From: Andalucia godoyi And28
Lineage: Eukaryota > Protista > Jakobida
Reading direction: 5' to 3'
Assembly (NCBI GenBank): GCA_009859145.1
Contig: VRVR01000039.1
Span: 128,284-192,283 of the forward strand
DNA: 64,000 nucleotides
This document shows, piece after piece, positions 4,434-43,800 of this stretch. A model generated the notes under the pieces. That model was not told the DNA's origin. It made no database searches and saw nothing but the letters and a program-made list of their open reading frames with translations. How positions within the stretch are numbered: position 1 is the stretch's first letter; every line of letters starts with the position of its first letter. A program made the translations under genes and the position numbers.

Positions 4434-5075
4434 TCATTGTAAACACTTTTCGTTTGCAACTGTACATTCTGTTCGAAATTTGATTGCGAGCACCGGCGCG
4501 AGCCAAGTGGAGAGACCGTGACGTTCAAGACTGCTGCGTGCCAGCTGCAGGGATTGGTGGAATTTTGCATTCACACCATTCATTCCATGCATGAACAGCA
4601 GTGCATTATTCGTCTCAGGTCTGCACATGCTTTGCAAACATTGCACGTCCTTATTATCGAGAAACACCACCAAGCTCGCTGGTTGCTGAGCGCCCAACGA
4701 ACATGCCCAAATGCCTCGCTCGGCAACAACCGGTTGCAAAGAATAATTCTGTAGCATTTCCTCACATCCGGAATCGAGCAACAGCGCCTTGATGCACCCG
4801 TTCTTGATCATCTCTTGAAACCACGGAGCGTGGTTCAACTGCAGCTGGAAGAGCATGGGATCCGAAAAGTGAAAAACACACTCTTCGCCAGTGCGCCTGT
4901 TACTCTGCATCCGGCCTTCAAAGCGGCATTCATTTGCCTCAACGTTTGTGAGACGAAATCGGAGATCAGGATAAAACGCTGAGAGAAGTCGCGCCACGTA
5001 GTGCCCCGCGTACCCTGTTTCAACCGCCGTGCCAACACTGCTGTTCTGGAGCGAAAACACAGCGATGCGGCACAT
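4434..5075 (-). CDS. hypothetical protein (213 aa; 5' structure uncertain)
   Basis: ATG-started ORF filling the gap between genes, convergent with CCDC180 (57-bp gap); no recognised motif. Confidence 0.4.
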   Translation of the reverse strand: MCRIAVFSLQNSSVGTAVETGYAGHYVARLLSAFYPDLRFRLTNVEANECRFEGRMQSNRRTGEECVFHFSDPMLFQLQLNHAPWFQEMIKNGCIKALLLDSGCEEMLQNYSLQPVVAERGIWACSLGAQQPASLVVFLDNKDVQCLQSMCRPETNNALLFMHGMNGVNAKFHQSLQLARSSLERHGLSTWLAPVLAIKFRTECTVANEKCLQ

Positions 5076-8522: not shown

Positions 8523-8550
8523 TGAGAAAATGCAAGTCCAGAAAGAAAAA

Positions 8551-8580
8551 GAAGAAGAAGAAGAAGAAGAAGAAGAAGAA
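8551..8580. repeat. (GAA)10 microsatellite
   Basis: Read directly, 28 nt upstream of the PIP5K start. Confidence 0.9.
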
Positions 8581-9211: not shown

Positions 9212-12200
9212 ATGGATGCCTTGAGGCAGCCTTCGCGCCCACCTCCTCCTTTAGGATCAGCCCCTTCTGCTCTTCGAGCAAATCCGACGACACAGTCAGT
9301 ATCACAACCACAATCACAATCCAGTGGTTCTTCGAACGCACAGCGCAGATTACCCGTTCAATCTCGTCCTCGTCCTGTATATACTGCATCAAATGCCGCT
9401 TTCCGTCCTCGTTTGGACGAGCCTGGTGCGGATGTTGAGGTTGTGCAGATTAATGATGCGTATGGCATGCGGCTCTCTTCTTCTGTTTCGGGTCCTGTAG
9501 CTGCTGGTACTTCTCCGTCCTCTCCAAGAGGCACGTCTTTTGGTGGGTATGTTCCGCCTTCTCACGCTGTGTTCCCTCGAAATCCGCCTCCATTGCCTTT
9601 GGCTATTCATGGGGTTTCAGCTGCCTCTCCAACTGACGTCAGGACGGATTCCGAGAAGAAATCGGAGAGACGATGGTTTTGGATCGGAATTGTCCACTGC
9701 ATCGCATTCTGGATACTGGTAGCGTTCTGCGTCTACACCTTCTTGTACATTCAAGAGGTGGAGTTAATTCGATACTCCTCGCTAAACCCCGACGTTGTCT
9801 ACGCCCAGTCCTTGCAGGCATCATCCCTTACCCTTTCTAACCCGAATAGTCAGTCATTAGTAGTAGAATCTACATCTGGATCTTCGTCACTTGTTGTGCA
9901 GTCGGCGAAAGGAGGTGCCCGGCTTGTTCTGCAAGAGAAACAAAATTCGGTTATCTTCTTGTCGAAACAAGGGACCTTTTCTTTGAGTATGAATGGCACC
10001 GAAACCATTATGGCATCGAATTCCGGAATGACTGTGCACGGAAATTTGACAGCAAACCAATTCACTGCCGATTCTTTGGATCTCTCCCAATCTCAGCAGA
10101 GAACGCCGTCCTCTGCAATTTCTCAGGTGCAAACATTCGCTGGAAGCCTCACAGCAATGCAAAATTCCGATATCATCCGTTTCGCATTTCTGAATGGGCA
10201 GCTTTTTTATTCGCAAAATGAGATTCCCACTTTCATCATAACCAACAATGTCCACATAACGCCTTACAGGGTCAATGGTAGTGTATTTCTTCAGGAAATG
10301 GTGGTTGATGCGGAGAGTTTGAGATGGAAAGGGTTCCGACTGTCGGTGATCGATGAAGGAGCTGTGAAATTTACGTCGCCGGGAACGTTCTTTTTCGTGT
10401 CGGCCACAGGGGCCATCGTGCTGGATGCGTGCTCGGTGGTGTTTCAGAACTCCTCGGCTCCAGTGGAAGTGCATCGAGTCATGTCTCCTGTGGGCCTGCC
10501 TCTTGTGCTAGGATCCTCCGAAGCGGTGTTGCTGAGCAGCAAGTCCGTGATCCTGAACTCGCCTGGAGGAGGTCGGTTGCATTCGTCGTCGTGGATGTCT
10601 TTGTCTTCGACTGCAGGGTATAATGTAAGACTTTCTGCAGGTTCGGAGAGCTTCGACGGAAGCGATGCTGTCGTTGTTGCGAATGCGACTGTTCCTGTTG
10701 GGCAAGAAGAGGTTGTTATTGATGCACCGGCAGGGCGTAAGAATGAGACTGTGTTTCGGTTGTCTGGTGGGTATCCGTCGCTACTTTTCGGAAGCAGTGC
10801 GTTCTCAAGCGGATCATTTTTTGCGATATCGGGAGACACGAGAGCGGCGGTTCTTTCGGTTTTTCACTCGTCCAATCGGAGCCGGCAAGTGTTGAGCATT
10901 CAACCTAGCAGAGATGATGGGGAAGTTCGGATGACGACGGGCAGCGCGCGGAGTCTTTTCTTGGAGAGTATCAGCGGAACTGCGTTCTTGGAGTTGCAGA
11001 AGGCATGGCGGATGTCGTCTGGACCGTCGCGGAGTCTGGAGCTTCATAACATTGATGCGGCCGGAGCCGGATCGATTTCGTGGATGGATGTTGGATTGCT
11101 GCGCCTTGTGAACGTGACTGTCGATTCGACGAGGCCTGTGCGAGCACCGGAGTTTTTTTCTGGTGCAAGTGCGGATGCGCTGCAGGGGGAATTTGTGTCG
11201 ATTACTGCAGCACTGGTCAATGTGTCTGAGGACTCAGTGCTGCGCGTTGGTCGTGGTATTGCTGAGATGAGCGGTGATTCTTTCGTGCTGCGAAGTATAT
11301 CTGGAAAGTCTATGGTGGTCTTCTCAGACGCAGGATTGCCAGCAGGCGGAGATTTGATTGTCAATGGCACATCGCGTGTGACGGTTTGTTCTGCGGCAGC
11401 GGATGTTCATATTCGTGCAAGCTCGCACGTGCGGTTGCTGTCGACGACCCAGTTTTGTCCGGAGGATGTGAATGATGTGCGTTGCGGATCGTGGTTTGCT
11501 GTGGACCCGAGTCTGCGAACCATCTCCTCTGACGCGCTGACGATTGACTTCAATCAATCGTCAATGAAGCTGCAAGCGATTGACGCGGACTACCTGTATA
11601 GTTCGTTGGGAGCATTGACTGTTGAATCGACTCGACTTCTGCAGGGCCGTGCAGGGCGAAATGGCGGGCTGTCTGACATGGGCATCATGTTCTGGAATTC
11701 CTCGATGATGACAGAACACGGTAATTTGTACCTGGAACCTCGAAACATGTCTGCTGCCGTTGAGATCGTTGGATCGAAGCGTTTTGTAGTGGGAGGCGTA
11801 TCTATCGATGGCTTATCGGGGCAAATTGTTGGAGGTGGCGGTGCGGTGGACGTACTGCGATCTCGTGTTTTGTTTTATGCAGATGGGTATATTGGCTCTG
11901 TTGGTAGTGTTGCGCTGAATGGCTCGGCAGGGCTTACGATTACGTCTCTTGAGGGCTCTCGGATGTTGCTGTATGGTGGGTCACGAGTAATTGATGGGGG
12001 TGAGATGATGCTAGACTGTGGTCGCGGTATTGTGTCCACAAGCGGCTCTGCGCTTCGATTAAACAGTTCTTCGATTGTGTTGGTCGATGGTGGCGCGTCT
12101 ACTCTTGTAGTCGGTAATAAGGACTCTGGGACATTTTTGGCGCTGCGTGCATGGGATGTATCGTCATTGAACATGACAATAGACTTTCGCAGATCCTCCA

Positions 12201-15200
12201 TCGAGGAAAGCGCTGGTAACCTCTCTATCGTTGCGGTGAACGGCTTTGTTGATATTTCGGCCGGCTCTGCTGTGATGCTGAGTTCGGGTGCAACGAAGCT
12301 TCTTAATCGCCAGTCGTCACTGGGTTTCGATTTTGCGTCACGCAAGTTGTTTACTTCGAAATCTGAAGGATTTGTGATTGATGTGGATTCTTTTGTTGAG
12401 ATTTATGGCAAGCAGTTGCTGGCGTTTGGTGCAACCGCGGATCGGCTTGTGATAAATGGCACCGGGCGTGTGATTACGGGTGGAAAGTTGTCCATGGCGT
12501 TTGGAGACTCGTTGCTGGAATCGTTGTCTGAAAACCCGTTGCGTCTTGTTTCGGGTGGAATGTTGCAAGTGAATGCGAGCGCTGGTGTGTACTTGGGGCG
12601 CCGTGCGGTTGTTTCGGATTTTGGAGAATCTCTTACTGTGAGTTTTGAGAATCGCACCATCGTGGCGAGCGGTGCCGCAACGCTGTTCTTGATGAGCGAC
12701 CGCTTGCAGTTCAGTTCCGTTTCTTCGGCGTTTTCCGATTTTAATGTGTCTTTTGTGTCTTCCGTCCCGGTTCGGATAGTGCGGACCGGCAATGCGTCAC
12801 CGACGCAGTTTTCGTTGGTTGGACAAGATGCAGTTTGCGATGGGTGTGCCCATGGAGGAGGTGTTGTAGTTGTTGGGGGATCTTCATTTTCTAGTTCGAA
12901 CGTGGGTGCTCGGGGAGGAGATGTGATTCTCGAAGGTGGTGGATCCATTGGTGCAGTTGGCTGGGGCGGCGATGTTGTGCTCCGTGGAGGTGCTTCTGGA
13001 AGCACCAGTCGAACTGGGAAGTTGCGATTAGAAGGCAGTGGCTTTCACCTGTTCCTGAAAACATTGAACATTTCCTTGGTGACCATGGACTCGTCTGGTG
13101 CTCTGATCCAATCAAACAAAAATTTGCAACTGTCTTTTTCAGCATTGACTTCGTCAGTGACTTTTCAATCAGGTATTTTTGTTTTTTCTGCCAATTCTTC
13201 GTTTGCTGCTGCGGGGGGTGCTTCGTCGGTTATATCTCGCACTGGTATCACGTTCTCCTCGGAATTTTCTTGCATACGCTCAAACTTACTGTATTGTTCA
13301 TTGTCCATGTACGCTTCTTCTTCGGTAATGCGACACCGCGATGTTGTGTTTCAAGCGACATCTTTACTGTCAGTCAGCTCGGGTTCTGTGTTTCGTCTTG
13401 GAATCGGTTCATCTGGAGCGACGTTGTCAACTTCCTCGCTGACATTGCCATTCAATGTACTGCTGGACATTGGAGATGGTATTTTGACACTACGCCGAAC
13501 GGCATCGGTGACTGCGGCAGGTGGTTTTTCAGTCGTTGGTCAACCATCTCTATCCAACAGCTGGGACGGAGGTTCCGTCCGAATGACCGGCGGAAACGTA
13601 TCTTCAGATGCTTTCGGGCTTCGTGGTGGATCAGTTCTCTTACGTGGTGGCTCTGGCAGTATGGATGCATCAGGTGGTCTTGTGCAGATTTCCGGAGGAA
13701 CCGGCTATGTTGGTGGATCGGTGTCTCTTCAAGCAGGCCGGGGAACCATTGTGCGCAATGGTTACATCACCATGACTAGTCCTGTGATGCGGTTTCGGTC
13801 TTCTAAATCGACGACGAGCATGGTGGAATTCGATGGAACTTTAACGACAAAGAAAATCGAGATCGGATACTTTGATGCGATGGCTCCTGAAAGTACAAAC
13901 AATACCCTCAGTCTATGTCTTTCAGCATTCGAAATGACCCTGATCGGAGGAACGATCATTCACCTGCAGACCATTCAAAGTACAAGCAGGAACTCTTCGA
14001 TAATGATTGGAAATCACGTTTCGGTTTCTGGATTTGAAACCAATGTGGTGTCCGTTCGTGGACAGATTGTGCGTTTGATTGACTCCCAGTTCTCAGTTGG
14101 CTTGGAGATGCGCAATGATTCTCTCGTGGTCAACAGAAGCCAGTCGGTTTCGATGTCATCTGGCGCGGATCTGTCGCTGTACGCTGGGTCGTCGATGGTG
14201 CTGTTCACAGGCGACGGTGGCTTGTCGGTTCTGCATCGTATTAGTGTGAATCCGCTGTCTGTGTGGCTAGGGACAGGAGTCAGCGATGTTGTCGTTTCCC
14301 GACCGAAATCAGTTGGCACTGCAGGGCATATGACTTCGGTATTTGGACAGAACGCTTGTGTGGGATGCGGATCTGGAGGAGGTGTGTTGATTGCAGCAGG
14401 CTCCGGCGACAGCGCAGTGTCGATTCCGTCTTCTGCAGGAGGTGTAACAACTGTTTCTGGAGGTAATGGGTTTGGTTTGGCGAATGGCGGCGATGTTGTC
14501 CTTCTGTCAGGAAATGCAACTACTGTTGGCTCTGCAGGCAACATTGTGCTGGTAACTGGAGCTGGTCAGTCGGGTGCATTGCATGGCTCTGTGCGTGTCA
14601 AGTCCTATGAATTCAGCGTTTCGTCGCCGGCTGCAGGAGATGTAGTGCTGTCAGTTCGCTCGTATGGATATGGCAATTCTTATTCGGAAGTGCGTATTGG
14701 AAATGCAGATACGCGAGTGTCTCCGGAAATGTCTGCATTCACGAGAAGTGTGGGTGTGCGTGGTGATAACGTGAGCATTTCTGGTGGCTCTGGGGTTTTT
14801 GTGAACACCGAAAGAAATGCGGCAGTGTATGAAACCAGGATTCTTGTGGGCAATCATTATGTTGCAGCTGAGAACAGCACCGGTGTTGTTTCTGTGCAAG
14901 CGGGGAAGGTGCAGCTCCGGGATTCGTTGGGGGCGTTGAGCATGGAGGTTGGTGGTTCGTATGCAGTGTTTAATCGAAGTCAAAACATTTCAATGTGGAC
15001 GGATGTATTTTCTCTGTCGGCAGTTTCAGAGGTGCGAATTGGCGTTGGTGCCGTTGGGGTATCCGTGAGCCCAAGTCCTGCTATTGTGGATCTGCGTGTG
15101 TCTCTGGGATCTGGTGCTAGCCGAGTCATTGTGAAGAGGCCGGAGTCGTTTGGAGGTGCCGGTCATGGAACATTGGTGTACGGACAAAGTGCATGCAGCG

Positions 15201-18067
15201 GCTGTGGGGCTGGTGGTGGGCTGGAATTTAGTGCCGGAAGTGGTAGTTGGTTTTCCGCAGTGTCGATACCCTCTGGTGGGGACATTGTTCTACGAGGAGG
15301 AGAGGGACAAGGACAGGCTTTCGGTGGAAACGTGTTTGTGACTGCCGGTAATGCGAGTTCAGCCGTCGGAGGCTCTGTGTACATAGAAAGTGGCTATGGA
15401 GCGAATGCGGATGCAACGGGGTCTGTTTTTGTGGACACACAGAATTTTGCCGTCCGGAGCCGTAGTGGGCAAGAGATTGTGTTTCTCGTGGACACTGCTC
15501 AGAGCAGCTTGTCTGTCGATCGAGTGTTGGTTGGGAATTGGAATGGGTCGCTGACCGCGTCTTCTGTTGCCTACACAGATGTTGTGGGCATCCGAGCTCG
15601 GAATGTCTCGATTGTTGGTGGCGAGAGTATTGAGTTCATCACGGAGACGAACATTTCGTCTGTGTCATCAATTTATGTTGGTTCGCACGGCGATCCACTG
15701 TCAGCGACTTCTCTGGTGTCTTTGCGCGGGAAGGTAGTTCAAGTTCTGGACGATTTTGGTGTTCTGTGGCTTTCCAGTTTTTTGAATGCTTTTCAGCTGA
15801 ATGCGCAGACGTTTGCTGTTGATTGTGACAATCTGCTTTTGTCTTCTTCAGTTCTTTCACAGATTGTTGTCAATAATTCGCAGTTTTTTTTGCATCCGGC
15901 GAACAAAAGTACTCCGTTGATTGTGACAATTGGGTCATCCAGGTCCGATGTTGTTTTGAGTAGGCCCGTTTCGTTTTCTGGTCCTGGTCACTCATTTTTC
16001 TTTGAGGGCCAGGATGGTTGTTTTAGCTGTGGGAGTGGCGGAGGATGGTCTGTTGTTGCCGGTTCTGCGCATTCTTTGTCATCATTTGATGCAGGTGGAA
16101 GTGTGTCATTCTTCGGTGGTCTCGGAATCAATGGTTCATCTGCTGGTAATGTCGATTTCTTCGCAGGAAACAGCAGTCTAGGAACTCCTGGAAATGTTTA
16201 TGTAAGGAGTGGCTCTGGTCTTTCTCGTGTTTCTGTAGAGGCGCAGACTTCTGTTTTTCGCTCTGTCTCAGGAAAGAATGTGTCTCTTCTTTCATTTTCA
16301 TTTCCAAGCTTACTGAATCCTTTGAAGCCGTCCGTTCTGTTTGGCGATGTCTATTCCAATATTGTAGCGTATGCTTCTATGCGATCTGCGAATATTACAA
16401 TCTCTACGGGTCGAAGTATGCAGATTTGGACTTCGGAACCGTCATCGAGTATTCTTTTAGGAACCAGTTCTCTTGGCGTGACAGAACAGGTCTCCATTCT
16501 TGCAAGGAGCGTTTTCTGCATTGATCGATTCGAAAATCCATCAGTCATAACAAACGATTCTGCGCTGTCGTTTTCTCGTAATTCTACTATTGATTTGGCT
16601 TCTGATGTGGTGACTTTGAAGGGGACATTTCAAACTCAGGTAATCGCTGGGTCTGATGGCATTGTGCTTTCTCCAAAAGGCTTGCGGGATCGTTTCATTC
16701 TAGTCATTGGAATGCAGGGAAGCGTTGTTTTTGATAGGCCACAAGGGAGTGTGTCGTCTGCGAGTTATACTTACTTTCGAGGGCAATCTGCTTGCGGAAA
16801 TTGTGGCAGTGGTGGCGTCCTCAAATTTTGCGGTGGAAGTGGTGATTATCCAACTTCATCTGCAAGTGGAGGTGTAATCATCCTCACTGGCGGTGATGGT
16901 AGGTCCTCTGCTAGTGGCGGTGCGATTGTTATGCGGAGTGGTAATTCGTCAAGTGCAAATGGGGGAAGTTTAGATTTTCAAACTGGATTCGGGTTGTTTG
17001 GTTCTTTACGTGGAAGGGTGATCGCAGAAGCCTATAGTGTTGCCTTACGAGGTTCTGCAGCTCATGTTATTTTTTTAGCAAGACCTCAGGTTTCTGGTAC
17101 TGATATATTAGGGGTGTTTGTTGGCAATCAGGATCCGAGTATAGTGCCCGGTTCTGAGTTGTATTCCGCTGAAATACGAGCAAGAGGAGACAATGTTACG
17201 TTTCAAGCTGCAGTATGCCATCGGTGGATCACTGAGTCTTCTCCAGTGTCATCGAATACTGCTATTGAAATTGGCGATTCTACGTCATTGTCTTCTGGGT
17301 ATCCTCGAAATCTGCTGTTTCGTTCAGGATCTGTACAAATGATGGATTCGTCTCTTGTGTCCTCGCTGTTTATTGATTCTTCCTCTGCTACACTTTCTCG
17401 TTCATCTAATTTGTACGTCAAAACATCTTCTGGGCAGACAACCTCAATCTACTTTGGAATTTCTCCATCTGATTCCCCGTTATCGGCTACGGAAAACATT
17501 ACAATCCGAGCACGGACGTTTGCCGTGTTTCAGGAGCTGTCTTCTGTTAGTGCCCGAATCGAGGTCACGGCAACCGATCTTTATTTCAGAGTGGCCTCGG
17601 GAAATGCAGTGATTGTCCAAGGAGGTGACTTGAATGTTGCTTCTGGTAAGGTTCGTGAAGCAGGATCGGCCATAGTGCCATCAGGTGCGATCCTGTTCTT
17701 TTCATCCTCTTGTCCTTCAGGGTTTACGGAGTTTGTCAGTGCGTCTGGTCGCGCAATTTTTGGTCCCACAACTACGTATCCTGTGGGAACCATCCTTGGA
17801 TCGTCACTTACTGCATCATTTTCAACGTTTCAGTTTTCCGTTCCTTCGCAGACAGTCACTGTTTCTCTTTCTCATGGTCACTCTACATTTAATGATATCT
17901 TGCCGTATTCTTGCGGCCAATACTATTGTGGGCCGTTGAATGTGCACACCGCTGGCTCCATTAGCCCTTCCACTGTGGATGTGTCTGTGTCTTCGGTGTT
18001 GACAACATCTGTTAGTCTTCCGTCTATTTTACCCATGGTCTTTTTGAGACTTTGTCAAAAGGATTAA
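9212..18067 (+). CDS. giant type II membrane protein (2951 aa), Gly-rich/CxxC repeat stalk, C-terminal phage tail-collar-like domain
   Basis: Pro/Ser-rich N-terminus and one TM helix (WFWIGIVHCIAFWILVAFCVYTFLYI, ~9673-9750), then a beta-rich region with many NxS/T sequons and GQxxCxxCGxGG + GGxVxLxGG repeats. C-terminus VPSGAILFFSSSCPSGFTE..GR..G....HGH....LPMVFLRLCQKD resembles tail-collar/short-tail-fibre domains. Confidence 0.85.
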   Translation: MDALRQPSRPPPPLGSAPSALRANPTTQSVSQPQSQSSGSSNAQRRLPVQSRPRPVYTASNAAFRPRLDEPGADVEVVQINDAYGMRLSSSVSGPVAAGTSPSSPRGTSFGGYVPPSHAVFPRNPPPLPLAIHGVSAASPTDVRTDSEKKSERRWFWIGIVHCIAFWILVAFCVYTFLYIQEVELIRYSSLNPDVVYAQSLQASSLTLSNPNSQSLVVESTSGSSSLVVQSAKGGARLVLQEKQNSVIFLSKQGTFSLSMNGTETIMASNSGMTVHGNLTANQFTADSLDLSQSQQRTPSSAISQVQTFAGSLTAMQNSDIIRFAFLNGQLFYSQNEIPTFIITNNVHITPYRVNGSVFLQEMVVDAESLRWKGFRLSVIDEGAVKFTSPGTFFFVSATGAIVLDACSVVFQNSSAPVEVHRVMSPVGLPLVLGSSEAVLLSSKSVILNSPGGGRLHSSSWMSLSSTAGYNVRLSAGSESFDGSDAVVVANATVPVGQEEVVIDAPAGRKNETVFRLSGGYPSLLFGSSAFSSGSFFAISGDTRAAVLSVFHSSNRSRQVLSIQPSRDDGEVRMTTGSARSLFLESISGTAFLELQKAWRMSSGPSRSLELHNIDAAGAGSISWMDVGLLRLVNVTVDSTRPVRAPEFFSGASADALQGEFVSITAALVNVSEDSVLRVGRGIAEMSGDSFVLRSISGKSMVVFSDAGLPAGGDLIVNGTSRVTVCSAAADVHIRASSHVRLLSTTQFCPEDVNDVRCGSWFAVDPSLRTISSDALTIDFNQSSMKLQAIDADYLYSSLGALTVESTRLLQGRAGRNGGLSDMGIMFWNSSMMTEHGNLYLEPRNMSAAVEIVGSKRFVVGGVSIDGLSGQIVGGGGAVDVLRSRVLFYADGYIGSVGSVALNGSAGLTITSLEGSRMLLYGGSRVIDGGEMMLDCGRGIVSTSGSALRLNSSSIVLVDGGASTLVVGNKDSGTFLALRAWDVSSLNMTIDFRRSSIEESAGNLSIVAVNGFVDISAGSAVMLSSGATKLLNRQSSLGFDFASRKLFTSKSEGFVIDVDSFVEIYGKQLLAFGATADRLVINGTGRVITGGKLSMAFGDSLLESLSENPLRLVSGGMLQVNASAGVYLGRRAVVSDFGESLTVSFENRTIVASGAATLFLMSDRLQFSSVSSAFSDFNVSFVSSVPVRIVRTGNASPTQFSLVGQDAVCDGCAHGGGVVVVGGSSFSSSNVGARGGDVILEGGGSIGAVGWGGDVVLRGGASGSTSRTGKLRLEGSGFHLFLKTLNISLVTMDSSGALIQSNKNLQLSFSALTSSVTFQSGIFVFSANSSFAAAGGASSVISRTGITFSSEFSCIRSNLLYCSLSMYASSSVMRHRDVVFQATSLLSVSSGSVFRLGIGSSGATLSTSSLTLPFNVLLDIGDGILTLRRTASVTAAGGFSVVGQPSLSNSWDGGSVRMTGGNVSSDAFGLRGGSVLLRGGSGSMDASGGLVQISGGTGYVGGSVSLQAGRGTIVRNGYITMTSPVMRFRSSKSTTSMVEFDGTLTTKKIEIGYFDAMAPESTNNTLSLCLSAFEMTLIGGTIIHLQTIQSTSRNSSIMIGNHVSVSGFETNVVSVRGQIVRLIDSQFSVGLEMRNDSLVVNRSQSVSMSSGADLSLYAGSSMVLFTGDGGLSVLHRISVNPLSVWLGTGVSDVVVSRPKSVGTAGHMTSVFGQNACVGCGSGGGVLIAAGSGDSAVSIPSSAGGVTTVSGGNGFGLANGGDVVLLSGNATTVGSAGNIVLVTGAGQSGALHGSVRVKSYEFSVSSPAAGDVVLSVRSYGYGNSYSEVRIGNADTRVSPEMSAFTRSVGVRGDNVSISGGSGVFVNTERNAAVYETRILVGNHYVAAENSTGVVSVQAGKVQLRDSLGALSMEVGGSYAVFNRSQNISMWTDVFSLSAVSEVRIGVGAVGVSVSPSPAIVDLRVSLGSGASRVIVKRPESFGGAGHGTLVYGQSACSGCGAGGGLEFSAGSGSWFSAVSIPSGGDIVLRGGEGQGQAFGGNVFVTAGNASSAVGGSVYIESGYGANADATGSVFVDTQNFAVRSRSGQEIVFLVDTAQSSLSVDRVLVGNWNGSLTASSVAYTDVVGIRARNVSIVGGESIEFITETNISSVSSIYVGSHGDPLSATSLVSLRGKVVQVLDDFGVLWLSSFLNAFQLNAQTFAVDCDNLLLSSSVLSQIVVNNSQFFLHPANKSTPLIVTIGSSRSDVVLSRPVSFSGPGHSFFFEGQDGCFSCGSGGGWSVVAGSAHSLSSFDAGGSVSFFGGLGINGSSAGNVDFFAGNSSLGTPGNVYVRSGSGLSRVSVEAQTSVFRSVSGKNVSLLSFSFPSLLNPLKPSVLFGDVYSNIVAYASMRSANITISTGRSMQIWTSEPSSSILLGTSSLGVTEQVSILARSVFCIDRFENPSVITNDSALSFSRNSTIDLASDVVTLKGTFQTQVIAGSDGIVLSPKGLRDRFILVIGMQGSVVFDRPQGSVSSASYTYFRGQSACGNCGSGGVLKFCGGSGDYPTSSASGGVIILTGGDGRSSASGGAIVMRSGNSSSANGGSLDFQTGFGLFGSLRGRVIAEAYSVALRGSAAHVIFLARPQVSGTDILGVFVGNQDPSIVPGSELYSAEIRARGDNVTFQAAVCHRWITESSPVSSNTAIEIGDSTSLSSGYPRNLLFRSGSVQMMDSSLVSSLFIDSSSATLSRSSNLYVKTSSGQTTSIYFGISPSDSPLSATENITIRARTFAVFQELSSVSARIEVTATDLYFRVASGNAVIVQGGDLNVASGKVREAGSAIVPSGAILFFSSSCPSGFTEFVSASGRAIFGPTTTYPVGTILGSSLTASFSTFQFSVPSQTVTVSLSHGHSTFNDILPYSCGQYYCGPLNVHTAGSISPSTVDVSVSSVLTTSVSLPSILPMVFLRLCQKD
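10248..10406 (+). repeat. 159-bp exact direct repeat, copy 1 (partner 20445-20603)
   Basis: Base-by-base identity from ATGTCCACATAACG to GTGTCGGCCA; offset 10,197 bp; flanks diverge immediately on both sides. Confidence 0.95.
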
Positions 18068-18994: not shown

Positions 18995-20839
18995 ATGTCA
19001 GATCCTTCGCTTGCAAGATCGATTCCTGTGAGCACCTTTAGCTCCGCCTCAGTTGCTGGTCGTGAAAAATCAAGAAGGGGAACGTTGGCTGAAAATTCAT
19101 TGCTTGGCTCAAAACTTCCGAGAGATGAAATTCCTGAAGATGCCGCTTTTGATGTTGAGCCTCTCACTGCAATGGAGCTGATTCCACGCCGGCACGCATT
19201 GCAGTCACAGGCTGTTTCTGAAGCTCCTTTTATTCCGGTTTTCCATGTACATTCCAAGAAAAATACTTCCGATTTGCAGCCTAATCCTTCGTCAGCACTC
19301 AGTGCGCAACCTGGAAACGGTCCGAATAATCTTCACGCTGCAGTCAATGGGTTGAAATCTTCAAACGCTATTCAAGAGGCTCGTCCATTCATAGAGCCGT
19401 TAAGCTCAAAAAGACAGTTTCTGATTCCGATACGGCCGCCTCCCCCTTCAATATCGGAAGAATTGATGGAACAGGGCCGCAGCGCCAGAAAACACTTGGC
19501 GAGTCCTATCGGAGAAGACATCCATTCTGGAGCAGCTGATGCTGTCTCTGGGATCTCGCAGTCTACGTATCCTCATACTTCCTTCAAGACTTCTCTGTTG
19601 TCTCAACATACAGCACGCCATCGAGATCATTTACAGAGTGTTATGGAAGAAGTTTCTGTAGACATTCGACCATTAACGAACATTGATTTGAGGTATCCTT
19701 CGCTTGAACATTCTGTAGGGCAGAGTGCGATTTCCAATTCGAGTAGCCCCAACGACGAACTGACAAATCTTGGCAAGGATCGAGTTGCGTCGTACCATTA
19801 CCAGGCGTCCCCGGAAATGACGACCACCGAGCCAGAGCATGCGACATCTTCAAAAAAGAGGCTTTTTTTCTGGATTTTCGTAATCCATGTGATCGCCTTT
19901 TGGTGCTTGGTTTGTTTTTGCATGTACACCTTTCTCTATCTTCGGAACGTAGATTCTATGCAATACGGGAATATCCAATCAACATCTTTGTCAGCTGGGA
20001 AGATAGAGTCAAAATCTGTGGTCGTATCTCAAACGGGGTCTCAACATATTCCCGTTCAATCTGATACCTCATCCTCCGCAGTTCTGATTAAGAGTGCTGG
20101 GGTGAAATCCAGTTTTAATCTCGTAGATGGCGAACAATCTGTCCAGTTGGCTTCTGCTGAAGGAATATTCACTCTCACCGTGAATCACAGTACAGTCGTG
20201 AAGTCCACGCAATCGGATACTTTCATTATGGGAAACCTGATAACGAATAACCTGTTCGCGAGCTCTCTGAACCTCTCACAATCAATCCTCTTCCACCAGA
20301 TCCCCGCAGTTCACGCAATAATGGGATCTCCGGCACAGTCCATGATGCCCAGAACCACCAGTTCTACAGAGATACGATTGACGTATGACGCGGGAGAACT
20401 CGACATTTCAGTCATGCAATCAGCTGTCCTTCATGTGAATCAGGATGTCCACATAACGCCTTACAGGGTCAATGGTAGTGTATTTCTTCAGGAAATGGTG
20501 GTTGATGCGGAGAGTTTGAGATGGAAAGGGTTCCGACTGTCGGTGATCGATGAAGGAGCTGTGAAATTTACGTCGCCGGGAACGTTCTTTTTCGTGTCGG
20601 CCAGGAACGCTCCTTCGTCAAAGGACACCCTGGAATTACCGGTAATGGAAGACTCCGCCAGTGAATCGGGCAGCCCACGATGCAACATCGTCGCGGACGG
20701 AAATGTAGCCGTCCTCAATTGCATGGAATTTGAAGCGTCCAGGGATGTGGCTCTGATATCATTTGTAGTCACACCCATTCGGAACTTCGTGTTCAACGGT
20801 GAGCATTGCATTATATCAGAATTACCGACTGACAACTGA
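18995..20839 (+). CDS. paralogue 2 of the 9212 protein (N-terminal part only; homology ends at 20603)
   Basis: Same architecture: TM FFWIFVIHVIAFWCLVCFCMYTFLYL, homologous beta region, then the identical in-frame 53-codon box. The last ~78 codons are merely the antisense of paralogue 3. Confidence 0.75.
   Translation: MSDPSLARSIPVSTFSSASVAGREKSRRGTLAENSLLGSKLPRDEIPEDAAFDVEPLTAMELIPRRHALQSQAVSEAPFIPVFHVHSKKNTSDLQPNPSSALSAQPGNGPNNLHAAVNGLKSSNAIQEARPFIEPLSSKRQFLIPIRPPPPSISEELMEQGRSARKHLASPIGEDIHSGAADAVSGISQSTYPHTSFKTSLLSQHTARHRDHLQSVMEEVSVDIRPLTNIDLRYPSLEHSVGQSAISNSSSPNDELTNLGKDRVASYHYQASPEMTTTEPEHATSSKKRLFFWIFVIHVIAFWCLVCFCMYTFLYLRNVDSMQYGNIQSTSLSAGKIESKSVVVSQTGSQHIPVQSDTSSSAVLIKSAGVKSSFNLVDGEQSVQLASAEGIFTLTVNHSTVVKSTQSDTFIMGNLITNNLFASSLNLSQSILFHQIPAVHAIMGSPAQSMMPRTTSSTEIRLTYDAGELDISVMQSAVLHVNQDVHITPYRVNGSVFLQEMVVDAESLRWKGFRLSVIDEGAVKFTSPGTFFFVSARNAPSSKDTLELPVMEDSASESGSPRCNIVADGNVAVLNCMEFEASRDVALISFVVTPIRNFVFNGEHCIISELPTDN
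20445..20603 (+). repeat. 159-bp exact direct repeat, copy 2 (partner 10248-10406)
   Basis: Encodes VHITPYRVNGSVFLQEMVVDAESLRWKGFRLSVIDEGAVKFTSPGTFFFVSA in the same frame in both genes. Confidence 0.95.
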
Positions 20840-21606
20840 AAGGTTTCGGAAACAGAACTCATAGTGACGGAGCTTTTCGTTTCTTGCAACACCAATCTGG
20901 CCCCCTGATCTGCAGCTTTGACAAACAGTTCAGAGGTTGAGTTAAGGGACTGCAATATAACTTCCTGAGATTCCGCTCGCGAAACAACAAGGGAGTTTGC
21001 TGCTGCAGAACCCGATGTTAGGGAATCTGCGTGAAAATTCTCAAATCGATTCTCGTGAACATGCCGCGCATAAATAAAGATGTATATACAGAACGCGCAT
21101 AGCAACCAAAATGCAAAGATGTGGACGATTGCAACTGCTCTAACGTAGTTGATGCGCGCCTTTCGATCCGTGTTCCGGGTTTTCCTTGCAATAGCCGCAG
21201 TCGCAGAAGTGGAATTTGAGAACATCTGCGGTAGTTCTGCGTTATCAGCGTTGTCCGCACGCCTTCGAGGCGAGAAGGTAGAAAGATGTTCCATTCTTGT
21301 CAACGGTTGAATCTCCACAGCGCTCACGGCAGTGGTGGTGGGATACATTTCGCCAGTTCTTGAAAAACCTTCGAAGTTGTCGAAAACTGGAGGATGACAA
21401 GAGTTCTCATCAAAAGACACGCTCCTTTCGTTAATTTCTTCCACACGGGAAGAGGTCAATTTTCGGTTCCGGACATCCGTTAACTCTGCGGAAATAGCAG
21501 GCGGAGGTGGACGGACAGGAATCATGAGATGTCGGTGAGGAGAAGAAAAAGCACCGATTTGCTGTTTTTGACTCCTGTTTACAGCGCCACCAACGGTATT
21601 TTCCAT
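20488..21606 (-). CDS. paralogue 3 of the 9212 protein (truncated; homology ends at ~20604)
   Basis: First ATG at 21606 (MENTVGG). Shares IPVRPPPPAISAEL with paralogue 2 (IPIRPPPPSISEEL), TM AIVHIFAFWLLCAFCIYIFIY, and GARLVLQE with paralogue 1. Runs into the antisense of the 159-bp box and stops at 20488. Confidence 0.7.
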   Translation of the reverse strand: MENTVGGAVNRSQKQQIGAFSSPHRHLMIPVRPPPPAISAELTDVRNRKLTSSRVEEINERSVSFDENSCHPPVFDNFEGFSRTGEMYPTTTAVSAVEIQPLTRMEHLSTFSPRRRADNADNAELPQMFSNSTSATAAIARKTRNTDRKARINYVRAVAIVHIFAFWLLCAFCIYIFIYARHVHENRFENFHADSLTSGSAAANSLVVSRAESQEVILQSLNSTSELFVKAADQGARLVLQETKSSVTMSSVSETFQLSVGNSDIMQCSPLNTKFRMGVTTNDIRATSLDASNSMQLRTATFPSATMLHRGLPDSLAESSITGNSRVSFDEGAFLADTKKNVPGDVNFTAPSSITDSRNPFHLKLSASTTIS

Positions 21607-22069
21607 TTGAATCAAAAGTGTACTGCAGAAATAAACGGAAAAGCGGTGTACAATGGCTGCATGAATGATCGCAGAATGAGGAACAATGCACCGTCGGTTT
21701 CAACGACTTCATTGCGTGGAATGCAAAGGAGATGCTGGATGGTGAGATATTTGAACTCTGTCCGCTAGTGGAAAATCTGGGTTCTTTCGTTTTCTTTTTC
21801 ACGATGGCTGTCACATCACGTCACAGCACAGATGTTGCGAGCACACATCCCCTGCTTAGGTGCGCTTTCTTCTTCTTTTTCTTCTTCAACCCTTGATTGC
21901 TGTTTTTCTGTTTTGCCAGCTGTACGTTGGCGTCTCTTCGCATTCCCTTGTGTTTGATGCCTTTTGTTTCCCTCTCTGTCCAGTTTTTTCCCGTGGCATT
22001 CTGGGAGCAAACCGAGAGATCTGCTTGCGTCTGGCCGGTTGCGTCATGCGATTTGCATCATTGTGAAAT

Positions 22070-26991: not shown

Positions 26992-28116
26992 ATGTCGAAT
27001 GTGTCAGAGGCGGTTGCGTCCAGTAGCTCGGAGGTCGACGAGTTGTTGGAAGAAGAATCATCTTTCTGGGGATCTGTGTGGGGGGCCGCGTCTCGGATAA
27101 CACAGAAAATTCAGAAATCTGTGGATGGAATCATTGCACCCGTTGAAGCACCCAGTCCCACTGGCCGCGAGGATCAACCTCCAGCAGAGAATCCACCTGT
27201 GCAAGAGCATGTTCTGGGTTCGGACGATGTGATTGAGTCTGATGCTGACGAATCCAAAAAAACTGGACTGTTTTCGTACTTTGCCAACAGCGACGAGTTC
27301 CGATTTGTCAGCAAACTTGCTTCCCAGGTTGCTTCAGATGCGATGAAGGTCTTGAATTCAGATATATCTGCACTGGCAGGTCCGACAACGGAGACCGAAT
27401 CGTTCGACAATTTAAATGACGCACTGCGTTCGGCAGACCAGGCTGCGCCTGTGCCTGAAGCAATGGAAGACACGCCAACCAATGCCGGCGACAGCATGGA
27501 TGGAGGATTCTCCATGTCGGAACTGAATAGCACTTTGGACGTGGGAGCAAAAGAGCGGGATGAAGAAACTGGTTCGTTTGATTCCAATTTCAGAAAGCAA
27601 GGAGGCATCGATCTATTGGAGAAGTTTGGAGAGCTCAATTCTGCTTTGGAAGGTACCGTCGTCGATCCGTCCGTTATCAAAAAGTTAAGGATTCCACAAG
27701 ATGCTCTTGATCTGTCGGTGAACACGGAATTGCTTGAGAAACTCCCCTTCCGCATTCAGGACCATCAAGGGGTTGCGGAGAATGTTGTTTCCGCAATGAG
27801 ATTCTTATTTGAATTTGCAGAGAATCTGTCGTCTACGAAGAAAGTTCCGGAGTGGTTCCGAGAAGTTAAACTGTGTTTTGCAGTCTCATATTCCGAAGAA
27901 TTTTCCACACCCCCCGATTCGCCACGCGATCTAAATCTGGATCTGGTGTTGCAAGATGCTGTGCATTTGCAGTTGTTTGTCGAGTTTGTGATTCAGCAAA
28001 TCGAGTCCGTGATTCGAAGCAGGAAGCTCGATGTTTCTCTTTCCGGGGAAATACGCAGCATTTTTTCTGATTGTGTGGAGCCGTTCGCGGCGTTGTTTAC
28101 GCAGATTGAGCGGTAA
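26992..28116 (+). CDS. FAM114A-like protein (tentative)
   Basis: 374 aa, acidic; SFWGSVWGAAS N-terminal motif and SFDSNFRKQGGIDLLEKFGEL resemble FAM114A/DUF719 segments. The coding call is solid, the family call tentative. Confidence 0.5.
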   Translation: MSNVSEAVASSSSEVDELLEEESSFWGSVWGAASRITQKIQKSVDGIIAPVEAPSPTGREDQPPAENPPVQEHVLGSDDVIESDADESKKTGLFSYFANSDEFRFVSKLASQVASDAMKVLNSDISALAGPTTETESFDNLNDALRSADQAAPVPEAMEDTPTNAGDSMDGGFSMSELNSTLDVGAKERDEETGSFDSNFRKQGGIDLLEKFGELNSALEGTVVDPSVIKKLRIPQDALDLSVNTELLEKLPFRIQDHQGVAENVVSAMRFLFEFAENLSSTKKVPEWFREVKLCFAVSYSEEFSTPPDSPRDLNLDLVLQDAVHLQLFVEFVIQQIESVIRSRKLDVSLSGEIRSIFSDCVEPFAALFTQIER

Positions 28117-40393: not shown

Positions 40394-40865
40394 TAAAAGG
40401 TCAAAAAAAAATGTGCCCAGCACATTTTCCCCTTTCGAATACACTACCTTGTGCTGTACAATAAATGACGCTTGCTTGGATGCCTGGTCCCTGTTCCCCA
40501 CAACCTCGTTGCTCACGGCCCCCCCTGCATCAGTGCCCACCGCAACCCGCAGGAGCGCTCCTGGCCTGCTGTAAAACCGTTCGACTGCTTCTGAAGAACA
40601 GACGATTTGGGGAAACTCCCGCCGCCCAAAGCATTGCGTTGCCCAGTTTTCCAATATCCAGTTTTCAGTATTCCAAATATCCAGTATCCATCGAGGATTC
40701 TCTTCAGGTTTTCTTGTGCTATCCTTTTCCTTGCTCTGTCTGTTTTGTCTGTCGCGGTGGGCAAACATAACAAACTAAACAACAAAACAACAACTGAAAA
40801 AAAAGAAAAGAAAAGAAAGGAAGAAAAAATAATAATATTAATTGAATTCTCGCTGCGTTGCTAGC

Positions 40866-43800
40866 ATGGAGTCTCTTCGTCTCTGGCTTCGTCTTTCGTT
40901 TGGCGCGCTTTCCGGAAGCGCAAAAAGCGAACTGGATACAAAAATACAGTCCGTGCTTTCCTCGGAAGCGGCCACACTCTTTTTGACGTCTCCGAATGTT
41001 CTCATTCTCCGTGTGCTCTTTTCGGAATCGCAGGGATCCATGTTCTGCACGAACGGATCTTGGTCGGCCGTTTCGGAGCCTGAGCAAGGAATGAGGAGCC
41101 CTGGAATGACTGCAACTTTCACTAAGCGGGTTCCATGCGTGGTCTCGGACGCGCAGTTCCACCACTGCGTCGGCGTTACCACGTCATCGGAAGGCCAAGG
41201 TCTTTCGCTGTATGAGTATGAGTACTGGATGTCACTGTCTTTGTCAGCGTCTTCAAAACAGGAGAAGGAGGCTGCTGTGGAGTACTCGACGACTCTGAAG
41301 CGTGTTGCAGAAGAAGTCTCATATCTCGGGGATCGATCAATCGAGTCGCTTGCGGATTCAATCCAGATTTTTTATGAGAGTCTGAATTCTCTATGGGTCG
41401 ATGGAAAGTACTCAAAGCAATATCCAGAGTCTCGAATGGTCGGCTTGCTGCAGGCGCTGTCATTCGCGATAGTATCCGTGTTGCAAGCGAAGCTTGACAG
41501 GTCCTCCTTATTGGACGGAGATTTCTCCTCTGTAAGACAGTCCGTAGATGATTCAGTTTCCGTCTGCGATCAGTGGATCAAGTGCACAACGGAGTTGACA
41601 GGAATCATGTGGCCAAACTCTGGGCATCGCTGGACCGGACAGCGTTTCTCAAGCCCTCTTGTTTCAGCTCTTTCGCAGCGACTGGAAGAGATATCCCGCA
41701 TTCGATCGCTGCATGAGCAGCTGAAAACCGTACTGGATTCGTCTGACCTGAAGCGAGAGTCCTTCGGTGACATGCTGACACCGCTCCATAGCATCAACGT
41801 GCTCCACATTACTGTGGACCTCTCCACAGGAATCCTTGATAGCCTTGACCGCTTTCAGAAAGCAAAGACCGATTGTTTATCGAAGCTGGCTCCCTTGGAG
41901 CAGCGCATTGCGGACCGGCTGAGTCTTCGATTTTCTTTTGTGCTGTCCAATCCCAACCAGTTGATTCACGAATTTTTGCGGTTTCAAAGTTTGATCAGTC
42001 TTGGATCCATTCGCACAACTCTCTCGAAAGAAAGGAAGATATGTGTCGATTACTTGGCAAAACATGCAGAAGATGTGAAGAAACAGTTATCTGTCGTCGA
42101 ACGGAGCAGTAGCCGAAAGGACACTGCGGCAGCAGCTTCGTTACTTGGGGTCAAGGTGGGGTTGTCCGCTGTGTCGGAGCACTTGATATGGGCCAGACAA
42201 CATGTTGTGAAGCTGCGTGGGTTCATTGAATTTGGAAATTCGCTACTGTCGGATTTAAGCTCGTATTCTGGTGTCCGAGAGCGTCTTGATGGCTGTTTGT
42301 CTGATCTCACCAATTTTGAAGAATCTCAGTTTCATGACTGGATTGATGCTGTCCGGCCTGCCGTTTCCGGAAAGAACGCGTTGTCTGGTTCATTAATGGA
42401 AATTGACAAGAAAGATGGTCGGCTGAAGGTCAACTACGACGAAGGGCTCGTCAATTTGATCAAAGAAGTTCGCCAGCTTTCATCGTCCGGCTTTCAGATA
42501 CCCCGGGAGATCATGGGATCGGTGCGAAATGCCGAAAAACTGTACAGATACGGTGTCATCTTGAAGCAGATTGCCAACTTTTACAATACTGTGGACAAGC
42601 AGATTGTCCTGAGCCAGAAGCCGATGTTGCTGGACGTTGCATTAGCTTTTGAAGAGGTTGTTAAGACACGTGTCTCATCTTCAAAGACTGCCTCAGGAAC
42701 ATGGGATGATGCAGAAGCGACTGCAAAGTATGTCTCACGATTGCAGGCCGCGTCGCAGCAGTTCGTTCAGGAAAATCGAAAGTTACGAAAGTATCATATG
42801 GAGATTTGCCAGGGGTTGTCTTGGCTTCTTGATTTGGATCTTGTTCGGCAGCAAGGAAAGTGGAAGGAGAAACTGGACGAGTTGCGCAGTGTGATTGAAA
42901 ATCTTGAGAGATCAGGATACAAGAACATGCAGATGTGGAAGTTGCATCTGGACAGACAACTGTACAAAGTTCTGGATTATCAATATGTTCTGGGTTTGAA
43001 TGCGCTGAATGTCATTCTTCCAGAGACAAAGGTAGAATTCGTTTTGAAGGATGGATCTGTTGTATTTCGGCCTTCGTTAGAGTCGTTGCGTGACAAGTAC
43101 TATTCTCGTCTCAAAGATTATGTTCGTTTGCCAACTCGGTTCAAAGGATTTTGCGGAAACGTGACATTATTTTCAGAGATTGTAGATCGAAACGCCGGTT
43201 TGCTGATCAAAGTCTATGAGAAAGCCGAGTCTTTGTTTTCAAAACTGGAGAGGGTTTCGGAACCTTTTGGCGCGTTTCTTGTTTTAACATCTGTCCCGGA
43301 CAGTTTAGATTTCGTCGTTGACAATTTGTCCTCGGTAGAAGATTTCGAGTACAATTTCAAGTTGATCAAGCAAAAAGGTAAGGATCTCGAGAAGCTGGAG
43401 AACGGTTGCCGGGTGGAGTGTTTCGCCGTGTCCTTTGTGTCTTTGAAGCGCGACATCGAAAGCCACTTGTCAGTGTTTGCAGATTCCGTTGTGTCCGGAT
43501 TGAGGAAAAAGGCTCTTGTACACGTGGAAAAGATCGCCAAGTTCCTTCAGTCGGCCAAGGACGCGGTTTCTCAGAAGCCACAGACGCTTGAGGAAATCGG
43601 CCAAGCAAATATGCAGTTTCGCAAGCTGAGCGAGGACCGTACCCAATTTTTGAAAGAGTTTGACGAGTTTGAGCTGAAGAATCGCCTGCTGAAGCAGGTG
43701 TCCGGGGAAGAATTGGATGTCTCCCAGTACCGCGTCCAGTGGGAGAAGTTTTCTGACATGGTTCTTGCTCATGAATTGATGATTAAAGAGCAAACGGATG

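Follow-up and report, generated by a model that had tools for sequence, protein, structure and literature searches.

The stretch analysed here (the window) comprises 64,000 nucleotides of contig VRVR01000039.1 of the jakobid Andalucia godoyi And28, positions 128,284 to 192,283 of the forward strand. On its plus strand, between 9212 and 18067, it carries an uninterrupted open reading frame (ORF) of 2,951 codons. Its predicted product is a giant type II membrane protein in which a cytosolic region and a single transmembrane helix are followed by a very long stalk and, at the extreme C-terminus, by a tip domain that belongs to a large, unnamed family of prokaryotic proteins and is remotely related to the tail-collar and tail-fibre tips of phages. 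We hold this architecture and this homology with high confidence. The features of the gene, in window coordinates, are the following:

9212..18067, plus strand: complete coding sequence of a predicted giant type II membrane protein of a jakobid family; 2,951 codons and stop
9212..9673, plus strand: predicted cytosolic N-terminal region, aa 1-154; Pro/Ser/Gln-rich, with no sequons and a basic cluster (KKSERR) at its end
9674..9748, plus strand: predicted single transmembrane helix (signal anchor), aa 155-179; from hydropathy, a six-member alignment and the transmembrane positions in paralogs
9749..12553, plus strand: membrane-proximal ectodomain, aa 180-1114; Ser/Val/Leu-rich and sequon-rich, no repeat detected
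12554..13381, plus strand: stalk unit 1, aa 1115-1390; GQDAVCDGC at aa 1204
13382..14071, plus strand: stalk unit 2, aa 1391-1620; degenerate, CxxC motif and cysteines lost
14072..14908, plus strand: stalk unit 3, aa 1621-1899; GQNACVGCGSGGG at aa 1712
14909..15733, plus strand: stalk unit 4, aa 1900-2174; GQSACSGCGAGGG at aa 1991
15734..16507, plus strand: stalk unit 5, aa 2175-2432; GQDGCFSCGSGGG at aa 2266
16508..17518, plus strand: stalk unit 6, aa 2433-2769; GQSACGNCGSGG at aa 2524, with a C-terminal extension
17591..18064, plus strand: C-terminal tip domain, aa 2794-2951; member of the unnamed prokaryotic 'CPxGW...PYIQLLVCQK' family and remote kin of phage collar and tail-fibre tips
17672..17764, plus strand: collar-like motif IVPSGAILFFSSSCPSGFTEFVSASGRAIFG, aa 2821-2851; invariant Cys2834-Pro2835 and Gly2846-Arg2847, predicted local distance difference test (pLDDT) above 90
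17873..17881, plus strand: HGH, aa 2888-2890; aligns with the second of the two nearly invariant HxH motifs of the family
18026..18064, plus strand: terminal strand ILPMVFLRLCQKD, aa 2939-2951; invariant Cys2948 and Lys2950, pLDDT 93 in the last block

Membrane anchor and stalk

The hydropathy of the ORF disclosed no N-terminal hydrophobic signal sequence and a sole strong transmembrane candidate, WFWIGIVHCIAFWILVAFCVYTFLY (aa 155-179), with a mean Kyte-Doolittle value of 2.4 over 19 residues. Because this segment is preceded by KKSERR and followed by an acidic stretch (QEVE), the positive-inside rule predicts that the N-terminus is inside and the C-terminus outside; as far as sequence can show, the topology of the jakobid protein is thus type II. 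A second, weaker hydrophobic peak (aa 392-411) lies within the beta-rich ectodomain and is probably not a transmembrane helix. Serine, glycine and valine account for 16.9%, 11.7% and 10.6%, respectively, of the 2,951 residues. The 49 NxS/T sequons all lie C-terminal of the helix and represent a two-fold excess, since shuffled ectodomains contained 25.0 ± 4.3 and none of 5,000 shuffles reached 49; the ectodomain is, on this evidence, probably N-glycosylated. The first-pass annotation of this stretch had proposed a protein with no signal peptide, one transmembrane segment at aa ~155-180, a type II orientation and dense sequons, and at the sequence level all of this was borne out.

In the alignment of the window protein with five relatives described below (P0002-P0005 and P0008), a His and a Trp within the helix are conserved in all six members (V.H....W...A...Y), which is unusual in a simple anchor and suggests association between helices, that is, oligomerisation, or a partner in the membrane. 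The first ~80 aa of the ectodomain are also conserved among paralogs (S..GS....V.S..G...LVL). The public model of the gene (P0001, 2,636 aa) starts at M316 and is without the first 315 codons (9212-10156), including those for the cytosolic tail and the helix. These 315 codons are homologous to the N-termini of the paralogs, and since the paralogs all have a homologous cytosolic region, transmembrane helix and juxtamembrane region, we consider the long ORF the better gene model and the public one probably a 5'-truncated annotation.

As to the stalk, about 2,700 aa of repeats had been announced at first sight. Tandem repeats are real, but those detectable span only aa 1115-2769, i.e. ~1,650 of the ~2,770 ectodomain residues, and at the sensitivity used none was detected within aa 180-1114. 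They form six units of about 230-340 aa each (~275 aa), which are 24-39% identical, with BLAST E-values down to 2e-31. A typical unit begins with a Ser/Leu-rich stretch, continues with RPxS...GH...GQxxCxxCGxGGG and with ~16-residue turns, three or four in number, that follow the pattern GGxVxLxxGxGxxxxx, and closes with a conserved VGN...YT...R..NVTI.GG...TE...SSI.IG segment. On account of this Gly-rich periodicity, a beta-solenoid is a reasonable guess. When a profile of the six units was compared with the PDB, the best match was the gp5/VgrG beta-helix (E 0.51); it is compositional only, and for this reason no fold was assigned. No relatives of the stalk were found outside jakobids in Pfam, NCBIfam, PHROGs or the PDB, or in an exhaustive phmmer search with aa 2390-2951, in which every non-jakobid match fell on the tip or on the final handful of stalk residues that precede it. 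The stalk therefore appears, at the level of these searches, to be jakobid-specific. The proposal that the whole protein is a domesticated phage fibre was not supported: because no phage homologs of the stalk were detected, the protein is better described as a eukaryote-specific stalk bearing a tip of prokaryotic type.

The tip domain and its relatives

The C-terminal segment (aa 2804-2951) reads GGDLNVASGKVREAGSAIVPSGAILFFSSSCPSGFTEF...GR...SHGH...LPMVFLRLCQKD up to the stop codon, exactly as first quoted. To characterize it, the phmmer search was run with aa 2390-2951 against 1.84e9 (1.84 billion) representative proteins at a cut-off of E<=1e-3. It returned 55 proteins, the top matches being 1,329-2,173 aa long, and 47 of them were not from jakobids (E 8e-10 to 1e-3). 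These 47 are short proteins, nearly all align only to aa ~2794-2951, and in many the alignment reaches their own C-terminus. A family profile used in the word-index search then yielded 216 proteins at E<=1e-3, nearly all annotated as 'hypothetical protein' and lacking a Pfam domain; in a few there are collagen repeats, Peptidase_S74 or the N-terminus of a prepilin. The same type of search gave only the protein itself among the matches listed when the whole 2,951-aa sequence was used, and nothing with its 228-aa C-terminus. The prokaryotic members are mostly short (median 239 aa); they begin with a hydrophobic segment and have the domain at their very end, which reads ...NAPYIQLLVCQKD; the C.K motif closes 158 of the 162 non-jakobid proteins. 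Some prokaryotic proteins (P0021, P0025, P0045 and P0049) carry the entire tip domain three times in tandem, with a LLACRKD-like motif closing each copy, so that the domain is not limited to the extreme C-terminus.

The family consensus is vPsGAvMFFnl.sCPsGWtE.t.arGRy.VGlpsGGtl.gt.GtaL...E.R..G.H.H..dpgH.H ... NAPYIQLLVCQKd, followed by the stop. In domain numbering, C41, P42, R54 and C155 are invariant and G53, P148 and K157 nearly so, and the window protein keeps them all (C2834, P2835, G2846, R2847, P2941, C2948 and K2950). The invariance of the two cysteines, one in the collar-like motif and the other in the last strand, suggests that they form a disulfide, which would fit an extracellular location. 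The family also has HxH motifs at positions 87/89 and 95/97, each His being present in at least 90% of 121 aligned sequences. The window tip retains H95 and H97 only, with Q and V at positions 87 and 89; among the eight tips of jakobid type, one HxH is kept in six and none in two. When profiles built exclusively from jakobid and exclusively from prokaryotic sequences were compared, hhalign gave 99.9% (E 4.6e-31, 147 columns). By these sequence comparisons, the tip truly belongs to the prokaryotic family. The likeness extends to the layout, as in both cases an N-terminal hydrophobic anchor is followed by a spacer and a C-terminal domain, with the same logic of anchor to distal tip. The differences are in size (a median of 239 aa versus 2,951 aa), in the two or more HxH of the prokaryotic proteins, and in the last strand, where the jakobid tips replace PYIQLL with P(M/V/G)(V/I)(F/Y)(L/F). 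The jakobid tips also form a clade of their own.

To find out where the prokaryotic relatives reside, one genome per prokaryotic species was scanned with a closer sequence set (A4) than the full diverse alignment (A1). This yielded 80 loci (L042-L121), all but two in genomes titled as metagenome-assembled. They are concentrated in Elusimicrobia, Patescibacteria (the candidate phyla radiation, CPR), DPANN archaea, Myxococcota, Solirubrobacterales and unclassified proteobacteria, with single loci in Bacteriovoracia, Omnitrophota and others, and across these lineages the family amounts to hundreds of proteins annotated as 'hypothetical'. One proteobacterial bin (LJ_bin-0460) carries at least eight copies of the tip family on separate contigs. 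Of the seven gene neighbourhoods examined, three are unremarkable stretches of chromosome and three lie in clusters resembling those of type IV pili or type II secretion systems (L037, 8001-8669; L038, 8001-8951; L039, 7001-7912), with genes for N_methyl pilins, T2SSE, T2SSF, PilM or secretin; one member of these clusters is a prepilin fusion encoded directly downstream of a secretin gene. In the remaining one (L041, 9547-10299 and 10795-11454), the family member stands beside a canonical PF07484 Collar protein of 250 aa and a C1q-domain protein. Lcl_C proteins are encoded further along the same locus, and these genes of an uncultured bacterium make up a small group with a putative role in surface recognition. 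A general role of the prokaryotic relatives as pilus-tip proteins was considered and rejected: in a strict scan for prepilin and T2SSE motifs, only four of the 80 loci had such markers within ±3 kb, and the pilus link is therefore occasional rather than general. No phage capsid, portal or terminase genes were present in the seven neighbourhoods. In these seven contexts, the nearest relatives of the tip are cellular genes of uncultured bacteria and archaea and not phage genes, and the idea of a fibre derived from a phage or a giant virus is not supported by them, the closest kin being short cellular proteins.

The kinship with phage proteins is more remote. Pfam PF07484 (Collar), proposed at the outset as the check on the tip, matched neither the whole protein at E<=1 nor the isolated C-terminus at E<=10, and at E<=0.1 it matched none of 121 sequences (the window tip plus 120 prokaryotic family members). 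When 50,697 phage records were searched with the C-terminus by tblastn, no match was significant (E 3-5), yet every one of them lay in a tail gene, and it was this that led us to the phrog_5795 family. The best match paired AIVPSGAILFFSSSCPSGFTEF..GRAIFG with AGVPSGLIIMFSGSTPSGWYDCNGANGTPDLRDRFIVG of an archaeal virus tail protein, at the site of its sub-threshold Collar match; the Collar matches of such bridging phage proteins reach 15-17 bits against a cut-off of 24. The collar-like motif aligns with VPSGLIIMFSGSTPSGW...DLRDRFIVG of phage tail proteins, and the terminal strand corresponds to ...PYIQLLVCQKD in the prokaryotic family and to ...PPYYALKFIMK in phage tail proteins. Hidden Markov models (HMMs) built from 12-27 homologs of the phage tail protein, with the seed sequence excluded, scored the tip at 9-11.5 bits, a value matched by 0-2 of 5,000 shuffles and by no other segment of the protein.

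Between the tip family and the phrog_5795-type phage family, hhalign gave 97.6% (E 3.7e-12, 126 columns), and the alignment is co-linear from the VPSG strand to the terminal strand (...LVCQK in the former, ...YIMK in the latter); the controls, a reversed target and the stalk units, gave 0.2% and 0.6%. A profile made from jakobid sequences only still gave 93.8% (E 1.7e-7). Members of the tip family match 13 annotated PHROG families, all of them tail fibre, tail or tail collar, with E-values down to 1e-16, as well as one unannotated family (7e-17). Against the PDB, the family profile matched the tail fibre 9qgo (E 0.02) and member P0054 matched 6ov6 (E 0.005); phmmer with the C-terminus found there only antibody chains at E>0.5, which we regard as noise, and a scan of viral contigs with the C-terminus gave no confirmed relative.

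As for structure, the AlphaFold2 model of the tip from a single sequence was unusable (pLDDT 33), whereas the one based on 121 sequences had a pLDDT of 74 and a predicted template modelling score of 0.47, and in it the collar motif and the last strand exceeded a pLDDT of 90. Foldseek searches of the PDB with this model gave the tail fibre of Pseudomonas phage Pa223 as best match (9nxk; E 0.056, probability 0.89, TM-score 0.33), and also 6ov6, and the first ten matches in BFVD were mostly phage tail collar, MdpB or tail fibre proteins (E 0.009-0.06, TM-score ~0.3). The annotations agree with one another but none of these scores is significant, and the fold evidence is consistent but not decisive. 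Collar-domain or MdpB-annotated proteins of giant viruses (the 'microcystin-dependent protein' of Terrestrivirus and the tail-collar protein of Fadolivirus) were among the top structural matches, from which it follows that collar-type domains circulate in viruses of eukaryotes. However, none was among the sequence homologs of the jakobid tip, and the homolog searches gave no evidence that the latter passed through a giant virus.

Altogether, profile-level homology and consistent, though weak, fold matches link the tip to the phage tail collar proteins (PF07484; the short tail fibre T4 gp12; MdpB/COG4675; phrog_8469, 9116, 31611, 1800 and 5795). Both have, in the same order, a hydrophobic strand, PxG(W/F), (D/G)R-h-x-G, an HxH region and a terminal hydrophobic strand ending in K, and in both the domain is at the distal C-terminal end of a fibre. 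They differ in that the Cys of the jakobid tip precedes PxGW, instead of following it as in the canonical Collar, and would pair, judging from its invariance, with the Cys of the last strand; moreover, the jakobid tip keeps one HxH and is mounted on a transmembrane-anchored eukaryotic protein and not on a virion. The gene does not belong with the baseplate components of the T4 gp12 type, since it encodes a eukaryotic membrane protein and has no phage genes nearby. By these criteria of sequence and profile, the tip is a distinct subfamily of the tail-collar superfamily lying outside the Pfam model. The placement among collar and tail-fibre tips made by the first-pass annotation was hence upheld through transitive and profile-level homology, and its interpretation as a whole is partly supported.

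The jakobid family and the genomic setting

Four of the proteins retrieved (P0002, P0004, P0005 and P0008) were identified by exact look-up as A. godoyi proteins (as a set, ANDGO_02946, _08282, _07176 and _02922), and P0006 as a transcript of Stygiella incarcerata (TRINITY_DN2387, 640 aa). P0003 and P0007, which come from a sequencing-run assembly and a metagenome, are of the same character. Full-length members share a short cytosolic N-terminus, one transmembrane helix, a conserved juxtamembrane segment, a Ser-rich stalk and the C-terminal tip, the helix being located at aa 73-220 in the paralogs. Andalucia has, therefore, at least five copies (the window gene and four paralogs), which differ in stalk length. 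An HMM of the stalk unit built on the window protein found six units in the latter, four in P0002, two in P0004 and one in P0005; P0006 has one unit and a weak second match, P0003 one strong match plus fragments, and P0008 none. The tip was found in all family members examined, although the tips of the Andalucia paralogs are only 26-37% identical to that of the window protein. In a neighbour-joining tree of 160 domains, with no support values and with distances near saturation (~0.7), the eight tips of jakobid type formed one clade, in line with a single origin. Searches of Pfam, NCBIfam and PHROGs with the whole paralogs gave nothing of note; a weak match of P0004 to Sarcoglycan_1 (E 0.035) was dismissed. 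Literature searches on the gene identifiers, on jakobids with tail fibres and on tail-collar domains in protists found nothing relevant, and the protein of anchor, stalk and tip appears to be without a described counterpart as a whole, and its family undescribed. The novelty lies in where a familiar sort of receptor-binding domain occurs, namely in a new subfamily, within an architecture not described before and in a host from another domain of life.

The surroundings of the gene are those of a eukaryotic chromosome. The window encodes Snf7, a DUF4455/4456 ciliary protein, PIP5K, a WD40-RING protein, a GDSL lipase, a saposin-like protein, Rad4, NT5C, a C9orf72-like protein, EngA, an axonemal-type dynein heavy chain and HAP2-GCS1, with PIP5K located 690 bp upstream of the gene on the opposite strand. 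The relative synonymous codon usage of the gene correlates with that of its neighbours (r 0.84), its GC content at third codon positions (0.45) is just below their range (0.46-0.58), and no viral hallmark genes were found in the window. The gene is resident in the eukaryotic genome and is not a contaminant, so that the linkage to flanking eukaryotic genes, whose failure had been named beforehand as fatal to the proposal, is confirmed. The A. godoyi genome is compact (~20 Mb) and has few introns (PMC7050145).

A few other features of the window deserve mention. The gene for the dynein heavy chain (40842-54064, plus strand) consists of two ORFs of 3,692 aa and 676 aa separated by a gap (51889-52047) that runs from GTATGT to CAG (GT..AG) and includes a CTAAT element and an extended pyrimidine tract; judging from this sequence, the gap is probably a spliceosomal intron of ~160 nt, in a region that is otherwise poor in introns. 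The HAP2 homolog (54214-63951, minus strand; 3,245 aa) is unusually large, with its HAP2-GCS1 domain restricted to aa ~1059-1331 and ~2,900 aa unannotated around it. A (GAA)n microsatellite of ~13 units (~8541-8580) occupies an intergenic position a short way upstream of where PIP5K translation starts. No match in Pfam was obtained for four ORFs, which encode 213-614 aa: 18995-20839 (plus strand), 26992-28116 (plus strand), 4434-5075 (minus strand) and 20488-21615 (minus strand); the one encoding 614 aa is the immediate downstream neighbour of the gene studied here.

Proposed function and competing explanations

We propose that the short cytosolic tail and the transmembrane helix would anchor the protein, in all likelihood in the plasma membrane, from which ~2,600 aa of beta-rich, probably N-glycosylated stalk, with its six ~275-aa units and Gly-rich solenoid-like segments, would project outward and carry the ~150-aa domain of the tail-collar and tail-fibre-tip superfamily as its outermost part. 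The tip, and not the stalk, would have been acquired by a jakobid ancestor from prokaryotes or their viruses (the direction of transfer is itself inferred) and joined to a stalk and an anchor of eukaryotic make, and the fused gene would later have been duplicated. By analogy to its kin in phages and prokaryotes, the tip would be the end that binds a ligand, and the protein would work as a long surface adhesin or receptor. We give this explanation, taken as a whole, a probability of about 0.5; the adhesin or receptor role, which rests on that analogy, seems to us evenly poised. T4 gp12 binds the core of lipopolysaccharide, and other characterised tail-fibre and collar proteins bind bacterial surfaces. 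Since jakobids eat bacteria and the characterised relatives bind bacterial surfaces, the most attractive ligand for a bacterivorous flagellate would be a bacterial surface glycan, that is, the protein would serve in the capture or recognition of prey. We put forward this more specific function, again by analogy, only tentatively.

Several points weigh against the proposal. The window protein, both whole and as its C-terminus, has no direct match to Pfam Collar, NCBIfam or PHROGs. The fold matches are weak (TM-score ~0.3, E 0.009-0.06) and come from a monomer model of moderate confidence, and the tree that unites the jakobid tips has neither support values nor distances away from saturation. 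Because the first HxH is lost in the window protein and two jakobid-type relatives have none, metal binding may not be conserved. Finally, the analysis is one of sequence and predicted structure, in which localisation, glycosylation, oligomerisation and ligand remain inferences.

A different view of the same architecture is that the protein is a structural component of a surface coat, glycocalyx or cyst wall, in which the stalk is the functional part and the tip a mere nucleus for folding and trimerisation that has no external ligand. The extreme Ser/Gly/Val content, the two-fold excess of sequons, the variable stalk length of the paralogs and the partial loss of HxH motifs in jakobid tips would all suit such a protein, and in phage fibres the C-terminal domains often initiate trimer folding. 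Nevertheless, the tip is the best-conserved recognisable module, both among all paralogs and between Andalucia and Stygiella, and it keeps all the invariant residues of a family whose phage kin are tail-fibre or collar proteins; besides, a pure spacer would not need a conserved transmembrane helix with polar residues. We regard this explanation as unlikely, even if it is the most serious competitor of the surface adhesin.

Recognition between cells of the same species, as by a gamete or mating agglutinin, or a fibre for attachment of cells to a substrate, seems to us more doubtful still. The sexual agglutinins of Chlamydomonas, giant fibrous hydroxyproline-rich glycoproteins on the flagella, are comparable in the way they work, being very long, heavily glycosylated, membrane-associated fibres with a distal recognition head, but no relationship in sequence was found; unlike them, the jakobid protein has a stalk rich in Ser, Gly and Val, with CxxC units, and a head of the type known from prokaryotes or phages. 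In favour of such a role, the membrane protein is giant and fibrous, bears its head distally and has several paralogs that diverge from it, and the HAP2-GCS1 gene in the same window implies that the organism has gamete-fusion machinery. However, HAP2 is 36 kb away with many unrelated genes in between and no sign of co-regulation, and the relatives of the tip are phage tail-fibre and collar proteins, the characterised ones of which bind bacteria, and proteins of uncultured prokaryotes.

We consider it very improbable that the resemblance of the C-terminus to collar domains is due to chance or convergence and that the 'CPxGW...LVCQK' family has an unrelated fold. It is true that Pfam Collar fails on all 121 sequences, that the Cys lies before Pro-x-Gly-Trp, unlike in the canonical motif, and that the Foldseek TM-scores are only ~0.3; against this stand the significant matches to 13 annotated tail-fibre and collar families in PHROGs, the hhalign value of 97.6% with clean reversed and unrelated controls and with co-linearity over the whole domain, C-terminal strand included, and the predominance of collar and tail-fibre annotations among the top fold matches. 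Contaminating DNA from a bacterium, a phage or a giant virus, or from a recent insertion of viral origin, wrongly joined to eukaryotic sequence, to which the exclusively prokaryotic and phage relatives of the tip might point, is effectively refuted by the single uninterrupted ORF that joins the tip to an anchor of eukaryotic type and a jakobid-only stalk, by its position 690 bp from PIP5K in a contig full of eukaryotic genes, by its native-like codon usage, by the four A. godoyi paralogs and the Stygiella transcript, and by the lack of viral hallmark genes in the window.

Returning to the anchored surface protein with an acquired tip, the gene offers a clean example of a transfer at the level of domains, from the prokaryotic and phage world to a deep-branching eukaryote, followed by fusion and expansion, and it has brought to light a large family of prokaryotic domains with no Pfam match or informative annotation. 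In our sample, this family is frequent where lineages include cell-attached or predatory members (CPR, DPANN, Elusimicrobia, Myxococcota and Bacteriovoracia). Many of these lineages live attached to other cells or prey on them, and the sample may be biased. By analogy, the role of the prokaryotic proteins may also be in cell attachment. For jakobids, the interest of the family is that, in a field where little is understood in molecular terms of how heterotrophic flagellates recognise their bacterial prey and keep hold of it, it provides concrete candidates: the tips are small, are present in several divergent copies in one small intron-poor genome, and are linked to domains that bind bacterial surfaces. 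It is conceivable, though we think it rather less than probable, that jakobids built a repertoire of prey receptors by mounting a captured bacterial or phage tip on stalks of eukaryotic invention and varied length, with divergent tips for different bacterial surface glycans. If this were true, a protist would in effect be catching the host of a phage with a tool taken from the phage itself.

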